From Octopus sinensis (taxonomy: Eukaryota), in contig NW_021824967.1 in the NCBI RefSeq assembly GCF_006345805.1, positions 1-16,902 on the forward strand: DNA of 16,902 bases, read 5' to 3'. Positions 3,019 to 12,070 of the stretch are shown one piece after another. The translations under genes and the position numbers were made by a program. Within the stretch, counting starts at the first letter, position 1, and the number at the start of each line of letters is the position of its first letter. The notes under the pieces are model-generated. The model saw only the letters and a program-made list of their open reading frames with translations. It did no database searches and was not told where the DNA came from.

Positions 3019-3970
3019 GGTGCAGGAGTGGCTGTGTGGTAAGTAGCTTGCTTACCAACCACATGGTTCCGGGTTCAGTCCCACTGTGTGGCACCTTGGG
3101 CAAGTGTCTTCTACTATAGCCTCGGGCCGACCAATGCCTTGTGAGTGGATTTGGTAGACGGAAACTGAAAGAAGCTCGTCGTATATATGTATATATATAT
3201 ATGTATGTGTGTGTGTGTTTGTCTCCCTAGCATTGCTTGACAACCGATGCTGGTGTGTTTACATCCCCGTCACTTAGCGGTTCGGCAAAATGAGACCGAT
3301 AGAATAAGTACTGGGCTTACAAAAAAGAATAAGTCCCGGGGTCGATTTGCTCGACTAAAAGGCGGTGCTCCAGCATGGCCGCAGTCAAATGACTGAAACA
3401 AGTAAGAGTAAACTTAGCGGTTCAGCAAAATGAGACCGATAGAATAAGTACTGGGCTTACAAAGAATAAGTCCCGGGGGTCGATTTGCTCGACTAAAGGC
3501 GGTGCTCCAGCATGGCCACAGTCAAATGACTGAAACAAGTAAGAGTAAACTTAGCGGTTCAGCAAAATAGACCGATAGAATAAGTACTGGGCTTACAAAG
3601 AATAAGTCCCGGGGGTCGATTTGCTCGACTAAAGGCGGTGCTCCAGCATGGCCACAGTCAAATGAGTGAAACAAGTAAGAGTAAACTTAGCGGTTCAGCA
3701 AAAAGAGACCGATAGAATAAGTACTGGGCTTACAAAGAATAAGTCCCGGGGGTCGATTTGCTCGACTAAAAGGCGGTGCTCCAGCATGGCCACAGTCAAA
3801 TGAGTGAAACAAGTAAGAGTAAACTTAGCGGTTCAGCAAAATAGACCGATAGAATAAGTACTGGGCTTACAAAAAAGAATAAGTCCCGGGGTCGATTTGC
3901 TTGACTAAAAAGGCGGTGCTCCGGCATGGCCGCAGTCAAAATGACTGAAACATGTAAAAGAGTAAAAGAG
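3019..3970 (+). mobile_element. tRNA-derived SINE family B with five tandem 3' modules
   Basis: Head ggtgcaggagtggctgtgtgg (A-box-like) and gggttcagtccc (B-box-like), then an internal (TA)/(TG) microsatellite. The ~137-bp 3' module starts at 3273, 3413, 3550, 3686 and 3824. Confidence 0.88.
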
Positions 3971-3992
3971 CATAAGAAACAAAAATACTGAC

Positions 3993-4116
3993 CCAATGGG
4001 AGGATATCAGCTCAGAGCAGTGCTTCTTGAGGATGTTGGCATCCATTTCTTCGGCAGATTGGTAGAACTTGATGCAGTTCTTCATAGTAACGAATGACAT
4101 CAATGCATTCTCACAC
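3993..4116 (-). CDS. ANKFY1: ANKFY1 coding exon 5 (BTB end / BACK-like helices)
   Basis: ttgcag|G TGT GAG ... CAT TGG|gtcagt, 124 nt. Encodes (R)CENALMSFVTMKNCIKFYQSAEEMDANILKKHCSELISSHW. Not in the ORF track. Confidence 0.95.
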
Positions 4117-4331
4117 CTGCAAAGGTGAGTGATAGTTTCAGAGGGAGAGAGAGAGAGAGGTCGAAGACAAAGGCATCATCATCATCATCATAGCAACTAT
4201 CGATAATGGCAACAGCTCCTGTTACCATTTTCACTAGTAGGGACCCATGGAGATTCCATGGCATAAGACGGTACATTTCAAAACATTATGTTACCATAGC
4301 AAAGAACACAAGCAAAGAATTTCAAAAAAAT

Positions 4332-4748: not shown

Positions 4749-4867
4749 AAAAAAACTCTTTTGAAATCCTAGCATTTAATCTAAACTGTACTTTGAAATA
4801 TAATTGAAATTACATTATGTACATTATTTACAATTGACGGATATTTGTCCTCATCTTGTTTGTTGTT

Positions 4868-4913
4868 AACACAACATTTCGGCTGATATACCCTCCAGGA
4901 TTCATCAGGTGTC
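4868..4913 (-). ncRNA. Degenerate hammerhead motif, family 3 copy B
   Basis: gacac-CTGATGA-a-tcctg[gagggtatat]cagcc-GAAA-tGTT-gtgtt. The core is intact but the base of stem II is disrupted. Confidence 0.5.
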
Positions 4914-5018
4914 TTGGGGAAATTTCAAACCTGGGTTCTCATTCCTAAGGTATTTTTCGATGTTATTATTATTATTATTTATATTAGACGGATATTTGTC
5001 CTCATCTTGTTTGTTGTT

Positions 5019-5064
5019 AACACAATATTTCGGCTGATACACCCTCCAACCTTCATCAGGTGTC
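5019..5064 (-). ncRNA. Minimal hammerhead motif, family 3 copy A (sense to ANKFY1 intron 4)
   Basis: gacac-CTGATGA-a-ggttg[gagggtgtat]cagcc-GAAA-tATT^-gtgtt. Stem II has one G-U pair, stem III is the loopless palindrome AAUAUU, and stem I is gacac/gtgtt. Confidence 0.65.
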
Positions 5065-5074
5065 TTGAGGAAGT

Positions 5075-5570
5075 GTTAGTTGAAGGCTACCAAACCTGCC
5101 ATACACAGACAACTTCAGCTTTATAAATCGTAAAAAATAGGGATTTTCATAGGAAAAAAGCACCTTTTTGATGTAAATAATTATTGGTGTTAACATGGTC
5201 CGATTTGAAATTTTATCTTCTACGGAAGGAAGAGCAAGCCTTCTTCCATCATACTCTCAATTTTGGTCAACTTGTACGGCAGGGTCTCGGAGGAGATAGG
5301 GTTAGTTGAAGGCTACCAAACCTGCCATACACAGACAACTTCAGCTTTATAAATCGTAAAAAATAGGGATTTTCATAGGAAAAGAAGCACCTTTTTGATG
5401 CAAATAATTTTTGGTGTTAACATGGTCCAATTTGAATTTTATCTTCAACGGAATGAAGAGCAAGCCTTCTTCTATCATACTCTCAATTTTGGTCAACTTG
5501 CGCCGCAGGGTCTCGGAGGAGATAGGGTTAGTTGAAGGCTACCAAACCTGCCACACACAGACAACTTCAG

Positions 5571-5608
<38 letters not shown>

Positions 5609-7538: not shown

Positions 7539-7719
7539 CTGTGAGAGGAGATAGAAAACAGGACACCAACACCATTACTATAATCAACATTGCATCCAAT
7601 GTCTATCCGAAAAGTTATGTATATATACATTGCGTGATGGCTAAATTGTTGCTGTTTGCTTTTAATTTCATGCACACACATTGTTTGTTTTTAATTTTGT
7701 CAACTAGTAGTGATACCAA

Positions 7720-8492
7720 TGCCAGTGGCATGTAAGAGAACCATCCGGAACATGGCCGTTGCCAGCGCCACCCCGACTGGTAAAAAGCACCATCCGACAG
7801 GCCTGGCCAGCCTGTAATGACATGCATAAGATCTGGTCATCAAATCTAAGTAGAGACATCAAACTTGAAATCTTCAAAGCCACAGTCAAACCAATTCTAC
7901 TATATGGCTCAGAAACCTGGATGTTATCAAAGAAGCTTGAGAGGTGGTTGGATGGAACTTACACTCGCCTTCTTATGAGAGCTCAAAATCTCTCGTGGAA
8001 GCGCCATCCAACCAAAATGCAAATATATGGGAAACTACCACCTGTGTCATCTCTTGTGAAACGTAGGAGAGTCCAGTTTGCTGGACATTGTTGTAGAGCT
8101 GAAAAAGAGGTAATTTCTACTCTCCTCCTCTGGAAGCCATCTACTCGCAATACCAGAGGGCGCACACTCTCCTACCCTGAAGTAATCTCCAGGGATACAG
8201 GCATCCAGCACCAGGACCTCCGTAATGCCATGATGGACCATGAAGTCTGGCGTAGCATGGTAAATTCCATTGTCTCGACCACGGTCGAACAATGATGATG
8301 ATGAGCATCCGATCATGGCCATTGCCAGCCTCCTCTGGCCCCTGTGCCGGTGGCACGTAAAAAGCACCCACTACACTCACGGAGCGGTTGGCATTAGGAA
8401 GGGCATCCAGCTGTAGAAACATTGCCAGATCAGACTGGGCCTCGTGCAGCCTTCTGGCTTCCAAGACCCCAGTTGAACCGTCCAACCCATGC
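7720..8492 (+). mobile_element. Non-autonomous family C element (7720-7797 and 8305-8492) split by the RTE insertion
   Basis: gtggcacgtaaaaagcacc / catccga.catggcc.ttgccagc modules lie on both sides of the LINE, followed by the gttggcattaggaagggcatccagc...ccaacccatgc body. A related older minus copy lies at ~11840-12070 and a 3' fragment at ~10560-10615. Confidence 0.7.
7798..8304 (+). mobile_element. 5'-truncated RTE-clade LINE (ORF2 C-terminal region only)
   Basis: Open frame to TGA at 8293-8295 with RTE-type motifs IFKATVKPILLYGSETW and RRRVQFAGH, then a (TGA)4 tail. catccga is duplicated at 7791-7797 and 8306-8312 (TSD). No RT catalytic core is present. Confidence 0.85.
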
Positions 8493-8638
8493 GATTTTAC
8501 TGAATAATTTTATTCATTAGTTTTTCAAGATATTTTTTTGTAATTTTGGTAAATATATCTGGTAAAATGAGATGTCATTATCATAATTTAGACAACAGTT
8601 TAGTCACCACACCCTGTATGTATATATATATGTGTGTG

Positions 8639-8677
<39 letters not shown>

Positions 8678-8848
8678 ATAAATATTAGGGAATAAATCCA
8701 AATTTACAGGGAAAAATCAGATTTAGGATTAAATCCAATTTTATAGTAAAATATTATATAATATAATTCAAGACAAAACCACTATTTTAAAACCAAACAA
8801 GGAAAGACTTAATCAATACATAAAATTTTAATATAAAGAAATAAACCG

Positions 8849-8891
8849 CCACTACAATCGTTTCATGTCTTCAATGACATTCGTCAGGTGG
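8849..8891 (-). ncRNA. Minimal type I hammerhead ribozyme motif (family 1, left arm; sense to ANKFY1 intron 3)
   Basis: Exact reverse complement of 8934-8976. Confidence 0.82.
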
Positions 8892-8933
8892 ATTAATCTG
8901 TTTTAATTTAAAACAGATTAGGAGATCGAAAAT

Positions 8934-8976
8934 CCACCTGACGAATGTCATTGAAGACATGAAACGATTGTAGTGG
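8934..8976 (+). ncRNA. Minimal type I hammerhead ribozyme motif (Penelope-like family 1, right arm)
   Basis: ccac-CTGACGA-atgtc[attgaa]gacat-GAAA-cgatt-GTA^-gtgg. Intact core, 5-bp stem II, 4-bp stem I. The stem III region ACGAUUGU is self-complementary with G-U pairs. Confidence 0.82.
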
Positions 8977-9092
8977 CGGTTTATTTCTTTATATTAAAAA
9001 TTTTTATGTATTGATTAAGTCTTTCCTTGTTTGTTTTGCAAAATAGTGGTTTTGTCTCGAATTATATTATATATATATATATATATATATGT

Positions 9093-9401
9093 GGAGGCAC
9101 AATAGCCCAGTGGTTAGGGCAGCGGACTCGCGGTCGTAGGATCGCGGTTTCGATTCCCAGACGGGGCATTGTGAGTGTTTATTGAGGTAAAAACACCTAA
9201 AGCTCCACGAGGCTCCGGCAGGGGATGGTGGCGATCCCTGCTGTACTCTTTCGCCGCAACTTTCTCTCACTCTTTCTTCTGTTGGCCTGCTCGCTTAGCC
9301 AGTGGGGTGGCGTCATTTGAAGGCTAAAACAATGCGAAGCGCATTGTGACCAGCGATGTGTAGCAACATCAGATAGCCTGGTCGGTCACGGTCACGGTGA
9401 T
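9093..9401 (+). mobile_element. tRNA(Arg)-like SINE (probably octopus OR-type)
   Basis: A-box TAGCCCAGTGG (9103-9113), B-box-like gtttcgattcc (~9147-9157), tRNA-like anticodon arm, (ggtcac)n tail, and (TA)n on both sides. The family name is from memory. Confidence 0.7.
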
Positions 9402-11575: not shown

Positions 11576-11588
11576 ACTAATCACTCAC

Positions 11589-11784
11589 CTGTAGGTCTCC
11601 TTGTTGAACAGTTCTCCGACCGTCTTGAGCAATCGAGAGACGAAACTGTCGTCGCTGCCAGCGCTCTGTCCAGTTGTTGCTATAGCGACATGGTATTTCT
11701 TTTCCACCTCGACCAAGCGTTCTTGGAGTTTCACGTATTCCTCGCGAAGTAACCTCAGGTGATTCTGCAATTTGCTCACCTCAC
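11589..11784 (-). CDS. ANKFY1: ANKFY1 coding exon 2 (coiled coil to start of BTB)
   Basis: ttacag|GT GAG ... TAC AG|gtgagt, 196 nt. Encodes (G)EVSKLQNHLRLLREEYVKLQERLVEVEKKYHVAIATTGQSAGSDDSFVSRLLKTVGELFNKETY(S), recognisably similar to the ANKFY1 N-terminus. Confidence 0.95.
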
Positions 11785-11839
11785 CTGTAATCAAGGAAGA
11801 CGAGGAAAAAGAAATGATGTAAAGAAGGTGGAAGTTATC

Positions 11840-12070
11840 ATTTTCATCACTGGCGTCGATTAACATCTGTTTGTCATGCTGGCATGGGTCGGGCCAGTTT
11901 GACAGGGCATGGCAGGAGGGCTGCACCAGGCTCAAATTGTCTGTTTTTGGTATGGTTTCTATGGCTGGATGCCCTTCCTAATGTCAACCACTTCACAGAG
12001 TGTAATGAGGGCTTTTTATGTGGTACCAGCACCAGTGGTTCTTTATGTGGTACCAGCATCAGTGCTTTTT
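11840..12070 (-). mobile_element. Older family C element copy
   Basis: ggctggatgcccttcctaatgtcaaccac and the ttt(t)atgtggtaccagca modules are diverged reverse complements of 8335-8492. Confidence 0.6.

Follow-up and report, generated by a model that had tools for sequence, protein, structure and literature searches.

A hammerhead-bearing foldback family of Octopus sinensis with the insertion architecture of Penelope-like elements

Introduction

Insertions of Penelope-like elements (PLEs) are strongly 5′-truncated and often carry an adjacent inverted, 5′-truncated copy, which leads to inverted repeats (Craig et al. 2021, PMC8557442). The PLE tail is 30-40 bp long and is often found at one end only, the preferred targets are (TA)n, and hammerheads are located near the 3′ ends (PMC8557442). 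Here we describe a foldback at positions 8674-9073 of a 16,902-nt stretch of Octopus sinensis DNA from NW_021824967.1 (this whole stretch is termed the window, and all coordinates are window positions). The foldback probably represents a single insertion, made head to head by PLE-type integration, of a hammerhead-bearing retroposon that is non-autonomous and mobilised in trans. It belongs to a young and abundant family, which represents a known kind of element and no new system.

One PLE protein that has been studied is PAc of Anolis, which cleaves and extends both DNA strands and prefers AT-rich DNA (Frangieh et al. 2024, PMC11167929). Reverse transcription by PAc begins at two internal sites, whose distance from each other corresponds to the tail. 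The PAc hammerhead cut is at +26 and the starts of the reverse transcriptase (RT) are at +111-118, i.e., 85-92 nt apart. The hammerhead is protein-assisted, its mutants do not impair insertion in vitro, and no reads end at the cut (PMC11167929).

Metazoan genomes harbor thousands of mostly solitary minimal hammerheads each (Cervera & de la Pena 2014, PMC4209133). Pairs of minimal hammerheads on opposite strands, 100-700 bp apart, have been known since 2014, and PLE minimal hammerheads show poor cleavage in vitro (PMC4209133). A further group, the animal non-long terminal repeat (non-LTR) retrozymes, comprises small, non-autonomous elements with type-I hammerheads that are thought to be PLE-derived or PLE-parasitic (Cervera & de la Pena 2020, PMC7229834), and a 2026 preprint derives animal retrozymes from the pseudo-LTRs (pLTRs) of PLEs (10.64898/2026.07.22.740005).

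Results and Discussion

The foldback consists of two inverted arms joined head to head

An earlier reading of the window from its letters (hereafter the original prediction) had proposed two inverted arms of ~140 bp around a spacer with its own 11-bp hairpin, each arm carrying a hammerhead ribozyme. The arms were recovered by an inverted-repeat search, which revealed a near-perfect palindrome at 8755-9073. The inner arms (8822-8894 and 8931-9003) are complementary at 99%, the outer segments at 91% (8785-8829 with 8998-9042) and 97% (8755-8788 with 9040-9073), and pairing reaches both ends. When folded as a single strand, the 319 nt gave -211 kcal/mol, with a z of -35 relative to shuffles. The proposed spacer hairpin turned out to be merely the two arms continuing, with a left arm that here lacks 11 nt (tttcgatctcc) present in the aligned family. 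Because of this deletion, the 11 nt ggagatcgaaa within the junction have no partner and are unpaired. The unit common to other copies spans ~8617-9090, i.e., it is wider than the palindrome itself (Table 1). The element is about 190 nt long with an additional tail of ~80 nt, non-coding, and similar to a short interspersed nuclear element (SINE).

The family is large and young

The genome-wide copy search suggested in the original prediction revealed a large family. With the 319-nt query, 1,282 first-look candidates were found in the 2.72-Gb genome, and all 40 of those scored were full-length. A pattern that fixes the hammerhead core and part of the stems gave 4,363 genome matches (none with the reversed control), and a pattern anchored on the flanks TCCACC and GTGGCGGTT gave 4,068 (12 with the control). 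The 21 aligned copies of sublineage S1, to which the window copy belongs, are 0-3.3% away from their consensus, and most of them less than 1%; BLAST identities of 90-95% are due to indels at the palindrome centre.

Copies have fixed 3′ ends, variable 5′ ends and a copy-specific centre

The hammerhead sense runs from the centre outward, and the outer termini are therefore the 3′ ends. Among the copies compared, two alternative fixed 3′ termini occur, and the 5′ end is variable. The first 3′ terminus is ...gtctcgaatt(a)atattatata, and the second lies ~80 nt beyond, after a tail of two 37-nt units. Of the 21 pairs, 20 have this tail on exactly one side and the remaining one (L012) has it on both, and in no pair is it missing from both sides. 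It is also found in sublineages S2, S3 and S5. The tail-less flank is always (TA)n among the 21 pairs, and (TA)n adjoins every copy examined on both sides, as for a (TA)n or AT-rich target.

Copies that depart from the symmetric pair were also collected. A solo arm (L059) carries no tail and has (TA)n on both sides, whereas another solo arm (L051) carries the tail and a unique 5′ flank. In two asymmetric pairs the inverted partner is reduced to the tail plus 30 nt (L057) or truncated within the hammerhead (L062). On contig 1, the hammerheads of inverted pairs are spaced 33 nt to 4.2 kb apart, and there are also solos and direct tandems. The 5′ ends of the units lie 8-45 nt upstream of stem I. 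Truncation was always observed at the inner side of an arm, never at the outer one, which rules out that a single hairpin RNA was copied whole from one end. The palindrome centre is different in nearly every one of the 21 aligned copies. Since the centres are unique though the copies are near-identical, the junction was made at insertion and not by slow decay.

The combination of a fixed 3′ end, variable 5′ truncation and an adjacent inverted, 5′-truncated copy is that of PLE insertions, with which the family also shares the tail at one end and the (TA)n or AT-rich targets (PMC8557442, PMC11167929). The likeness extends to the position of the hammerhead, which in PLE insertions and in the octopus element precedes the RT start (the 3′ end of the unit as inserted) by about 90-100 nt. 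In the octopus element, about 95-100 nt separate the predicted cut and the tail-less 3′ end, a spacing that resembles the 85-92 nt of PAc.

We propose that a PLE protein with RT and GIY-YIG endonuclease (EN) domains breaks a (TA)n microsatellite, and that both broken DNA strands would prime reverse transcription of the element RNA. Each cDNA would begin at one of two internal start sites, such that one is tailed and the other tail-less, would extend toward the 5′ end of the RNA, and would halt at a variable point. Joining of the two cDNAs head to head would then give a palindrome in which the outer 3′ ends are fixed, only one side is tailed and the centre is specific to the copy. The hammerhead would most likely act as in PLEs, in the protein-assisted processing or folding of the template RNA. 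Within the inserted palindrome it would be a passenger, with the sense motif sequestered in the hairpin of a read-through transcript. If so, the family is a very young and clean example of palindrome building by Penelope-type retrotransposition, in which the very small size of the element and the near-identity of its copies make every junction readable, and it may serve as a handy natural data set on the PLE integration mechanism and on the role of PLE hammerheads.

A near-perfect, MITE-sized palindrome with TA-rich flanks and a long RNA or DNA hairpin could also be a foldback (FB) element or a miniature inverted-repeat transposable element (MITE), i.e., a cut-and-paste DNA transposon that targets TA and ends in long inverted repeats, with the hammerhead as a passenger or a chance match. 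The Rfam matches of the region are only of the hairpin type (plant microRNA precursor models, e.g., MIR7504, which score the long hairpin), and longer members of the family have long arms, internal repeats and no open reading frame (ORF), as in Drosophila FB elements. Nevertheless, such a transposon is highly improbable in light of the copies described above. The solo arm L059 sits in (TA)n, and the asymmetric pairs L057 and L062 have intact outer ends and are truncated at the inner side. The one-sided tail of ~80 nt means that the termini are not inverted repeats of each other, the centres are new in each copy although the copies are only 0-3% diverged, and direct tandems occur. In addition, the hammerhead block is conserved while the neighboring sequence diverges, and the motif is very rarely expected by chance (see below). 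No matching transposase-bearing relative was seen. Automatic pipelines will mis-call such insertions as MITEs or microRNA precursors.

Intact PLEs are present in the genome, with no convincing sequence similarity to the foldback family in the loci compared

PLEs are abundant in the genome, in which a GIY-YIG search gave 5,029 first-look candidates. An intact 780-aa ORF with RVT_1 and GIY-YIG domains was found in an element with pLTR repeats, so that autonomous RT plus GIY-YIG elements exist in the same genome as the foldback family. The sample of PLEs used for comparison consisted of the L044/L045 family and 12 GIY-YIG loci, which is a small share of the PLE families of the genome.

Several results weigh against a PLE-mediated origin. 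When the arms and the longer members were compared by blastn with 14 PLE-bearing loci, nothing convincing was found; neither arm nor tail showed nucleotide similarity to the two PLE families examined, and the matches in L040 and L034 look like independent insertions. The long foldbacks and the window were also searched by tblastn with the 780- and 883-aa PLE ORFs, which gave no match. The longer members, with arms of up to 1.4 kb and middles of up to 2.9 kb, carry no RT or EN remnant, and no ORF of more than 167 aa is present in the four most widely spaced (1.7-4.2 kb) inverted pairs of contig 1. The tail of ~80 nt, with its two 37-nt units, is longer than the 30-40 bp published for PLEs, and target-site duplications are unreadable inside (TA)n. 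Finally, private mutations are often common to both arms (L007, L012, L015 and L018), and the two cDNAs would therefore stem from one source RNA or locus, or one arm was copied onto the other.

With no sequence similarity to the PLEs sampled, PLE dependence is therefore deduced from the architecture alone. The non-autonomous PLE derivative of the original prediction is consistent with the insertion architecture, the conservation of the motif (see below) and the intact PLEs in the genome, but it finds no backing in homology to the two PLE families compared. Unlike PLEs, the octopus element has no ORF and is of SINE size, and its mobilisation by a PLE protein, as well as the priming from two strands, is what we infer from the shape of the insertions. 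On balance, a PLE-type insertion mobilised in trans probably accounts for the foldback.

The 780-aa PLEs (L039:2362 and L045:5163) have a minimal hammerhead of their own, ~570 nt downstream of the ORF and beside a pLTR repeat. It is a U3-A8 core variant with the sequence UUGAUAA-GGUUC..GAACC-GAAA-CAUG-U.

The motif of the arms resembles a minimal type-I hammerhead of the dimer type

The original prediction of a hammerhead on both strands was borne out by a descriptor, which found the 43-nt motif ccac-CUGACGA-auguc-auugaa-gacau-GAAA-c-gauu-g-UA|gugg in each arm (Table 1); its presence on both strands is a trivial consequence of the inverted duplication. The catalytic core C3U4G5A6N7G8A9 ... G12A13A14A15.1 and the U16.1-H17 site are present on both strands, with all eleven core nucleotides in place. 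The layout is that of three helices, with an open helix I of 4 bp (CCAC/GUGG), a helix II of 5 bp with a 6-nt loop, and a helix III that comprises one C-G pair and a GAUU loop. A regular-expression descriptor gave no matches in 20 Mb of Markov-1, composition-matched random sequence, and the analytic chance rate of the motif is ~7e-9 per position.

The motif had been called a textbook hammerhead, which goes too far given the 4-bp stem I, the A-U at 10.1-11.1, the lack of an Rfam match and the monomer fold (see below). Likewise, the stem III region ACGAUUGU is self-complementary when two G.U pairs are counted, but not otherwise. The proposed check with Rfam was negative: the hammerhead models (Hammerhead_1, 3, II, HH9 and HH10) gave no gathering-score match in the window, and no hammerhead was found at E<=10 on 8700-9120. 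Rfam Hammerhead_1 does detect other, canonical hammerheads in the O. sinensis genome.

Folding of the isolated 56-nt RNA as a monomer was no better than that of shuffles (z about 0.2-0.4). With two copies, RNAcofold gave the double-hammerhead topology as the minimum-energy structure for representatives of S1, S4a and S2b, the last of which has a perfectly palindromic loop 3. In this structure, helix I and an 8-bp helix III form between the two molecules, and helix II forms within each. The gain over two monomers was -5.0 kcal/mol for S1, -9.0 for S2b and -6.2 for S4a. These predicted structures support the view that the motif is a minimal type-I hammerhead of the dimer type, whose stem III has 1 bp and whose loop is palindromic.

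Such a motif is like the metazoan PLE minimal hammerheads (PMC4209133), which are of type I, have a short helix I (4-5 bp) and a helix III of ~1 bp with a palindromic loop, which implies that they act as dimers, and which also occur in thousands of copies and in opposite-strand pairs. It differs from them in that G10.1-C11.1 is absent (10.1 is A or U, 11.1 is any base, and the two are often unpaired), in that helix II has a constant 4-bp UGUC/GACA core instead of the 6-8 bp typical there, and in that it is not located within a recognisable pLTR of a PLE that has an ORF.

The hammerhead block is conserved while its surroundings diverge

For the sampling of sublineages, anchors outside the core were used and the core was left free. 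At least about ten sublineages were distinguished, and the core is intact in about 85-90% of copies among the matches listed. The window copy (S1) reads CUGACGA-AUGUC-AUUGAA-GACAU-GAAAC-GAUU-GUA, and the majority sublineage S2 reads CUGAAGA-UUGUC-GAUCAA-GACAA-GAAAC-GAUU or AAUU-GUA. S3 has GG(U)AGCA as loop 2 and AUUU as loop 3. In S4, S5, S6 and S8, N7 is U or A, loop 2 has 7-13 nt and loop 3 is GAUC or AAUU.

When representatives of S1-S6 were aligned, the only conserved blocks were the hammerhead and a 3′-terminal block of ~60 nt. The 5′ region is unalignable between sublineages, and the linker after helix I has diverged with indels. The core, stems I and II, C15.2/G16.2 and U16.1-A17 are invariant among sublineages; differences are found at N7 (C, A or U), in loop 2, which has 6-13 nt, in loop 3 and in the flanking linker. 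In these alignments, the variation appears confined to positions at which hammerheads tolerate it, and the hammerhead block is apparently under constraint in active lineages. The 3′-terminal block, ttttatgtattgattaagtctttccttgtttg..gtggttttgtctcgaat, is a candidate region for RT recognition and initiation.

Positions 1 and 4 of loop 3 covary as G.U, A-U and G-C (GAUU, AAUU and GAUC), and the mismatched loop AAUC was found in none of the ~300 matches listed. This covariation supports, at the level of sequence, the intermolecular helix III of a double hammerhead. A further candidate, a compensatory change at 10.1/11.1 from A-U in the window copy to U-A in L025, was dropped on account of the U.U, A.A, A.C and A.G found in other sublineages.

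In spite of this conservation, the insertion could be of the PLE type and the hammerhead block could serve as something other than a ribozyme, i.e., as a protein-binding or RNA-dimerisation module, or as part of a promoter, of the template RNA. The 10.1/11.1 positions are occupied by A-U, U-A, U.U, A.A, A.C or A.G, so that the pair is not maintained and is often mismatched, and the conserved G10.1-C11.1 of known hammerheads is missing, in the window copy as elsewhere. Stems I and II are invariant, bar one U.G wobble in S6, and their pairing has no covariation support. The negative Rfam searches point the same way, as do the poor in vitro cutting of PLE minimal hammerheads (PMC4209133) and the unimpaired insertion by PAc with hammerhead mutants, with no reads ending at the cut (PMC11167929). 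On the other side, the eleven core nucleotides, the UH site and the three-helix layout are kept across roughly ten sublineages, with variation only at the tolerated positions; the covariation in loop 3 keeps the helix III of the dimer, and the double hammerhead is the cofold minimum. The 10.1-11.1 pair is of the Watson-Crick type in S1 and S2, which are the two commonest sublineages. We consider a block with no ribozyme function somewhat less likely than not.

A related reading is that the hammerhead block would be mainly an RNA dimerisation module. Helix III would pair two templates, and a dimeric PLE RT/EN would load both and prime both strands of the broken (TA)n, which would lead directly to the head-to-head insertion. 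The covariation of the helix III palindrome, the freedom of 10.1/11.1, the dominance of inverted pairs and the private mutations common to both arms would all be accounted for in this way. We regard it as unlikely, and mention it as a speculation.

We conclude that: i) the motif is, with a little more probability than not, catalytically competent in some context, as a dimer and/or with a protein; and ii) it is unlikely to act as a hammerhead inside this intronic palindrome, because the sense motif would pair with the other arm in the ~140-bp hairpin of a read-through transcript.

A chimeric palindrome links the family to other hammerhead repeats

On contig 5, at about 30.25 Mb (L025:641-1826), we observed a perfect palindrome of 1,186 bp, in which a 12-nt spacer separates two arms of 587 nt with 100% complementarity. 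Its outer 155 nt and the tail belong to the family of the foldback. Upstream of the foldback-type motif, by 185 nt and on the same strand, each arm has a canonical type-I hammerhead whose Rfam score (36.4 bits) is above the cut-off. The arm is a mosaic of an unrelated 194-nt segment, a hammerhead unit of ~203 bp and the foldback arm with its tail. The ~203-bp repeat, for which there are 993 first-look candidates, also builds 431-bp tandem, retrozyme-like arrays (L027/L028). A second copy of the chimera, on contig 12 (50403703-50404617), is 100% identical and has a spacer of 41 nt. Spacers of 12 and 41 nt in identical long copies again fit a centre that is made at insertion. The composition of the chimera suggests template switching between hammerhead-bearing RNAs.

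With the animal retrozymes (PMC7229834), the octopus family shares small size, non-autonomy, a type-I hammerhead and a presumed link to PLEs. If the family were a metazoan retrozyme, RNA from its tandem hammerhead units would cut itself, form circles and be retrotransposed, and the foldback would be incidental. Canonical, Rfam-positive type-I hammerheads do occur in 431-bp tandem repeats of the same genome, the chimera fuses such a unit to the motif of the foldback on the same strand, and retrozymes have been traced to PLE pLTRs (10.64898/2026.07.22.740005). Unlike retrozymes, however, the family is dispersed mostly as solos and head-to-head pairs, and only rarely as direct tandems. The unit ends are not at the predicted cleavage site, and the 5′ ends lie upstream of stem I by the 8-45 nt given above. 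The chimera was found at two loci only. A retrozyme origin is hence improbable, and PLE-type insertion remains the preferred account.

The hammerhead of the tandem arrays (contig 16, about 25.146 Mb) reads GUAU-CUGAAGA-GACCC..GGGUC-GAAAC-AUGU-GUC, and is repeated head to tail every 431 bp.

The window contains a second, unrelated hammerhead family at 4860-5090 on the minus strand, with a hammerhead at 5019-5064 and a decayed tandem copy at 4870-4915, ~149 nt downstream. Its sequence, GACAC-CUGAUGA-A-GGUUGG..UCAGCC-GAAA-UA-UU|GUGUU, has the classic features of PLE minimal hammerheads, namely a bulged nucleotide after A9, G10.1-C11.1 and a 6-bp helix II. Genome-wide, at least 3,125 first-look candidates were found for this family. 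Units of ~127 nt are typical of this family, and an inverted partner adjoins several of the copies. It is adjoined by 2.2 copies of a 226-bp unit (95% matches) followed by (TA)17, at 5075-5607.

Features and surroundings of the foldback

Table 1. Coordinates of the foldback, its parts and its flanks in the window
Feature	Position	Strand	Basis
(TA/TG)n microsatellite adjoining the tail side, probable insertion target	8617-8673		Sequence; other copies flanked likewise
One-sided 3′ tail of the left arm	8674-8754	-	Direct repeat, two ~37-nt units (8684-8720 and 8721-8757)
Left arm, 5′-truncated copy with 3′ end at 8755	8755-8894	-	Inverted repeats; outer end fixed among copies
Minimal type-I hammerhead-like motif, predicted cut between 8853 and 8852	8849-8891	-	Descriptor match
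Head-to-head junction (palindrome centre), with a 12-bp hairpin that continues the arms	8895-8930		Alignment of 21 copies
Right arm, tail-less 3′ end at about 9065-9073	8931-9065	+	Inverted repeats, family alignment
Minimal type-I hammerhead-like motif, predicted cut after A8972	8934-8976	+	Descriptor match
Conserved 3′-terminal block ttttatgtattgattaagtctttccttgtttg..gtggttttgtctcgaat	9002-9063	+	Conserved among S1-S6; mirror in left arm at ~8765-8826
(TA)n flank on the tail-less side	9066-9091		Sequence, alignment

Minus-strand ORF pieces that resemble exons were found at 215-586, 1783-2061, 3939-4175 and 11588-11977, and the first of them has Pfam ankyrin repeats. The foldback lies between these exon-like pieces, and is therefore intronic to a minus-strand gene. 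The pieces resemble the N-terminal part of ANKFY1; a PDB sequence search and the protein atlas gave no usable name, and the gene name and the intron number of the original prediction are unconfirmed.

Insertions of this family put perfect hairpins of ~140 bp into the introns of a heavily RNA-editing animal. Sequencing runs were used as contig-level assemblies; none of them is on record as RNA, and the library type was guessed. The foldback family is present in runs with four organism labels. Two small runs that were guessed to be RNA (runs X1 and X8) have each one contig with clustered changes in the left arm: 13 A>G changes at 8789-8841 in one, and 4 T>C changes at 8783-8788 in the other. Both clusters are absent from two large, DNA-sized runs of related organisms. 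The clusters look like ADAR hyper-editing of the foldback hairpin, with one contig per run and a guessed library type.

Directly after the (TA)n flank of the foldback, a tRNA-derived, SINE-like repeat extends from 9092 to about 9415, with a partial Rfam tRNA match at 9096-9120; the same SINE-like repeat is also present in locus L017. On the other side of the foldback, a plus-strand open frame of 193 aa (7714-8292) gave a borderline match to Pfam DUF6451 (28.1 bits, with a cut-off of 28), and is probably a fragment of another retroelement.

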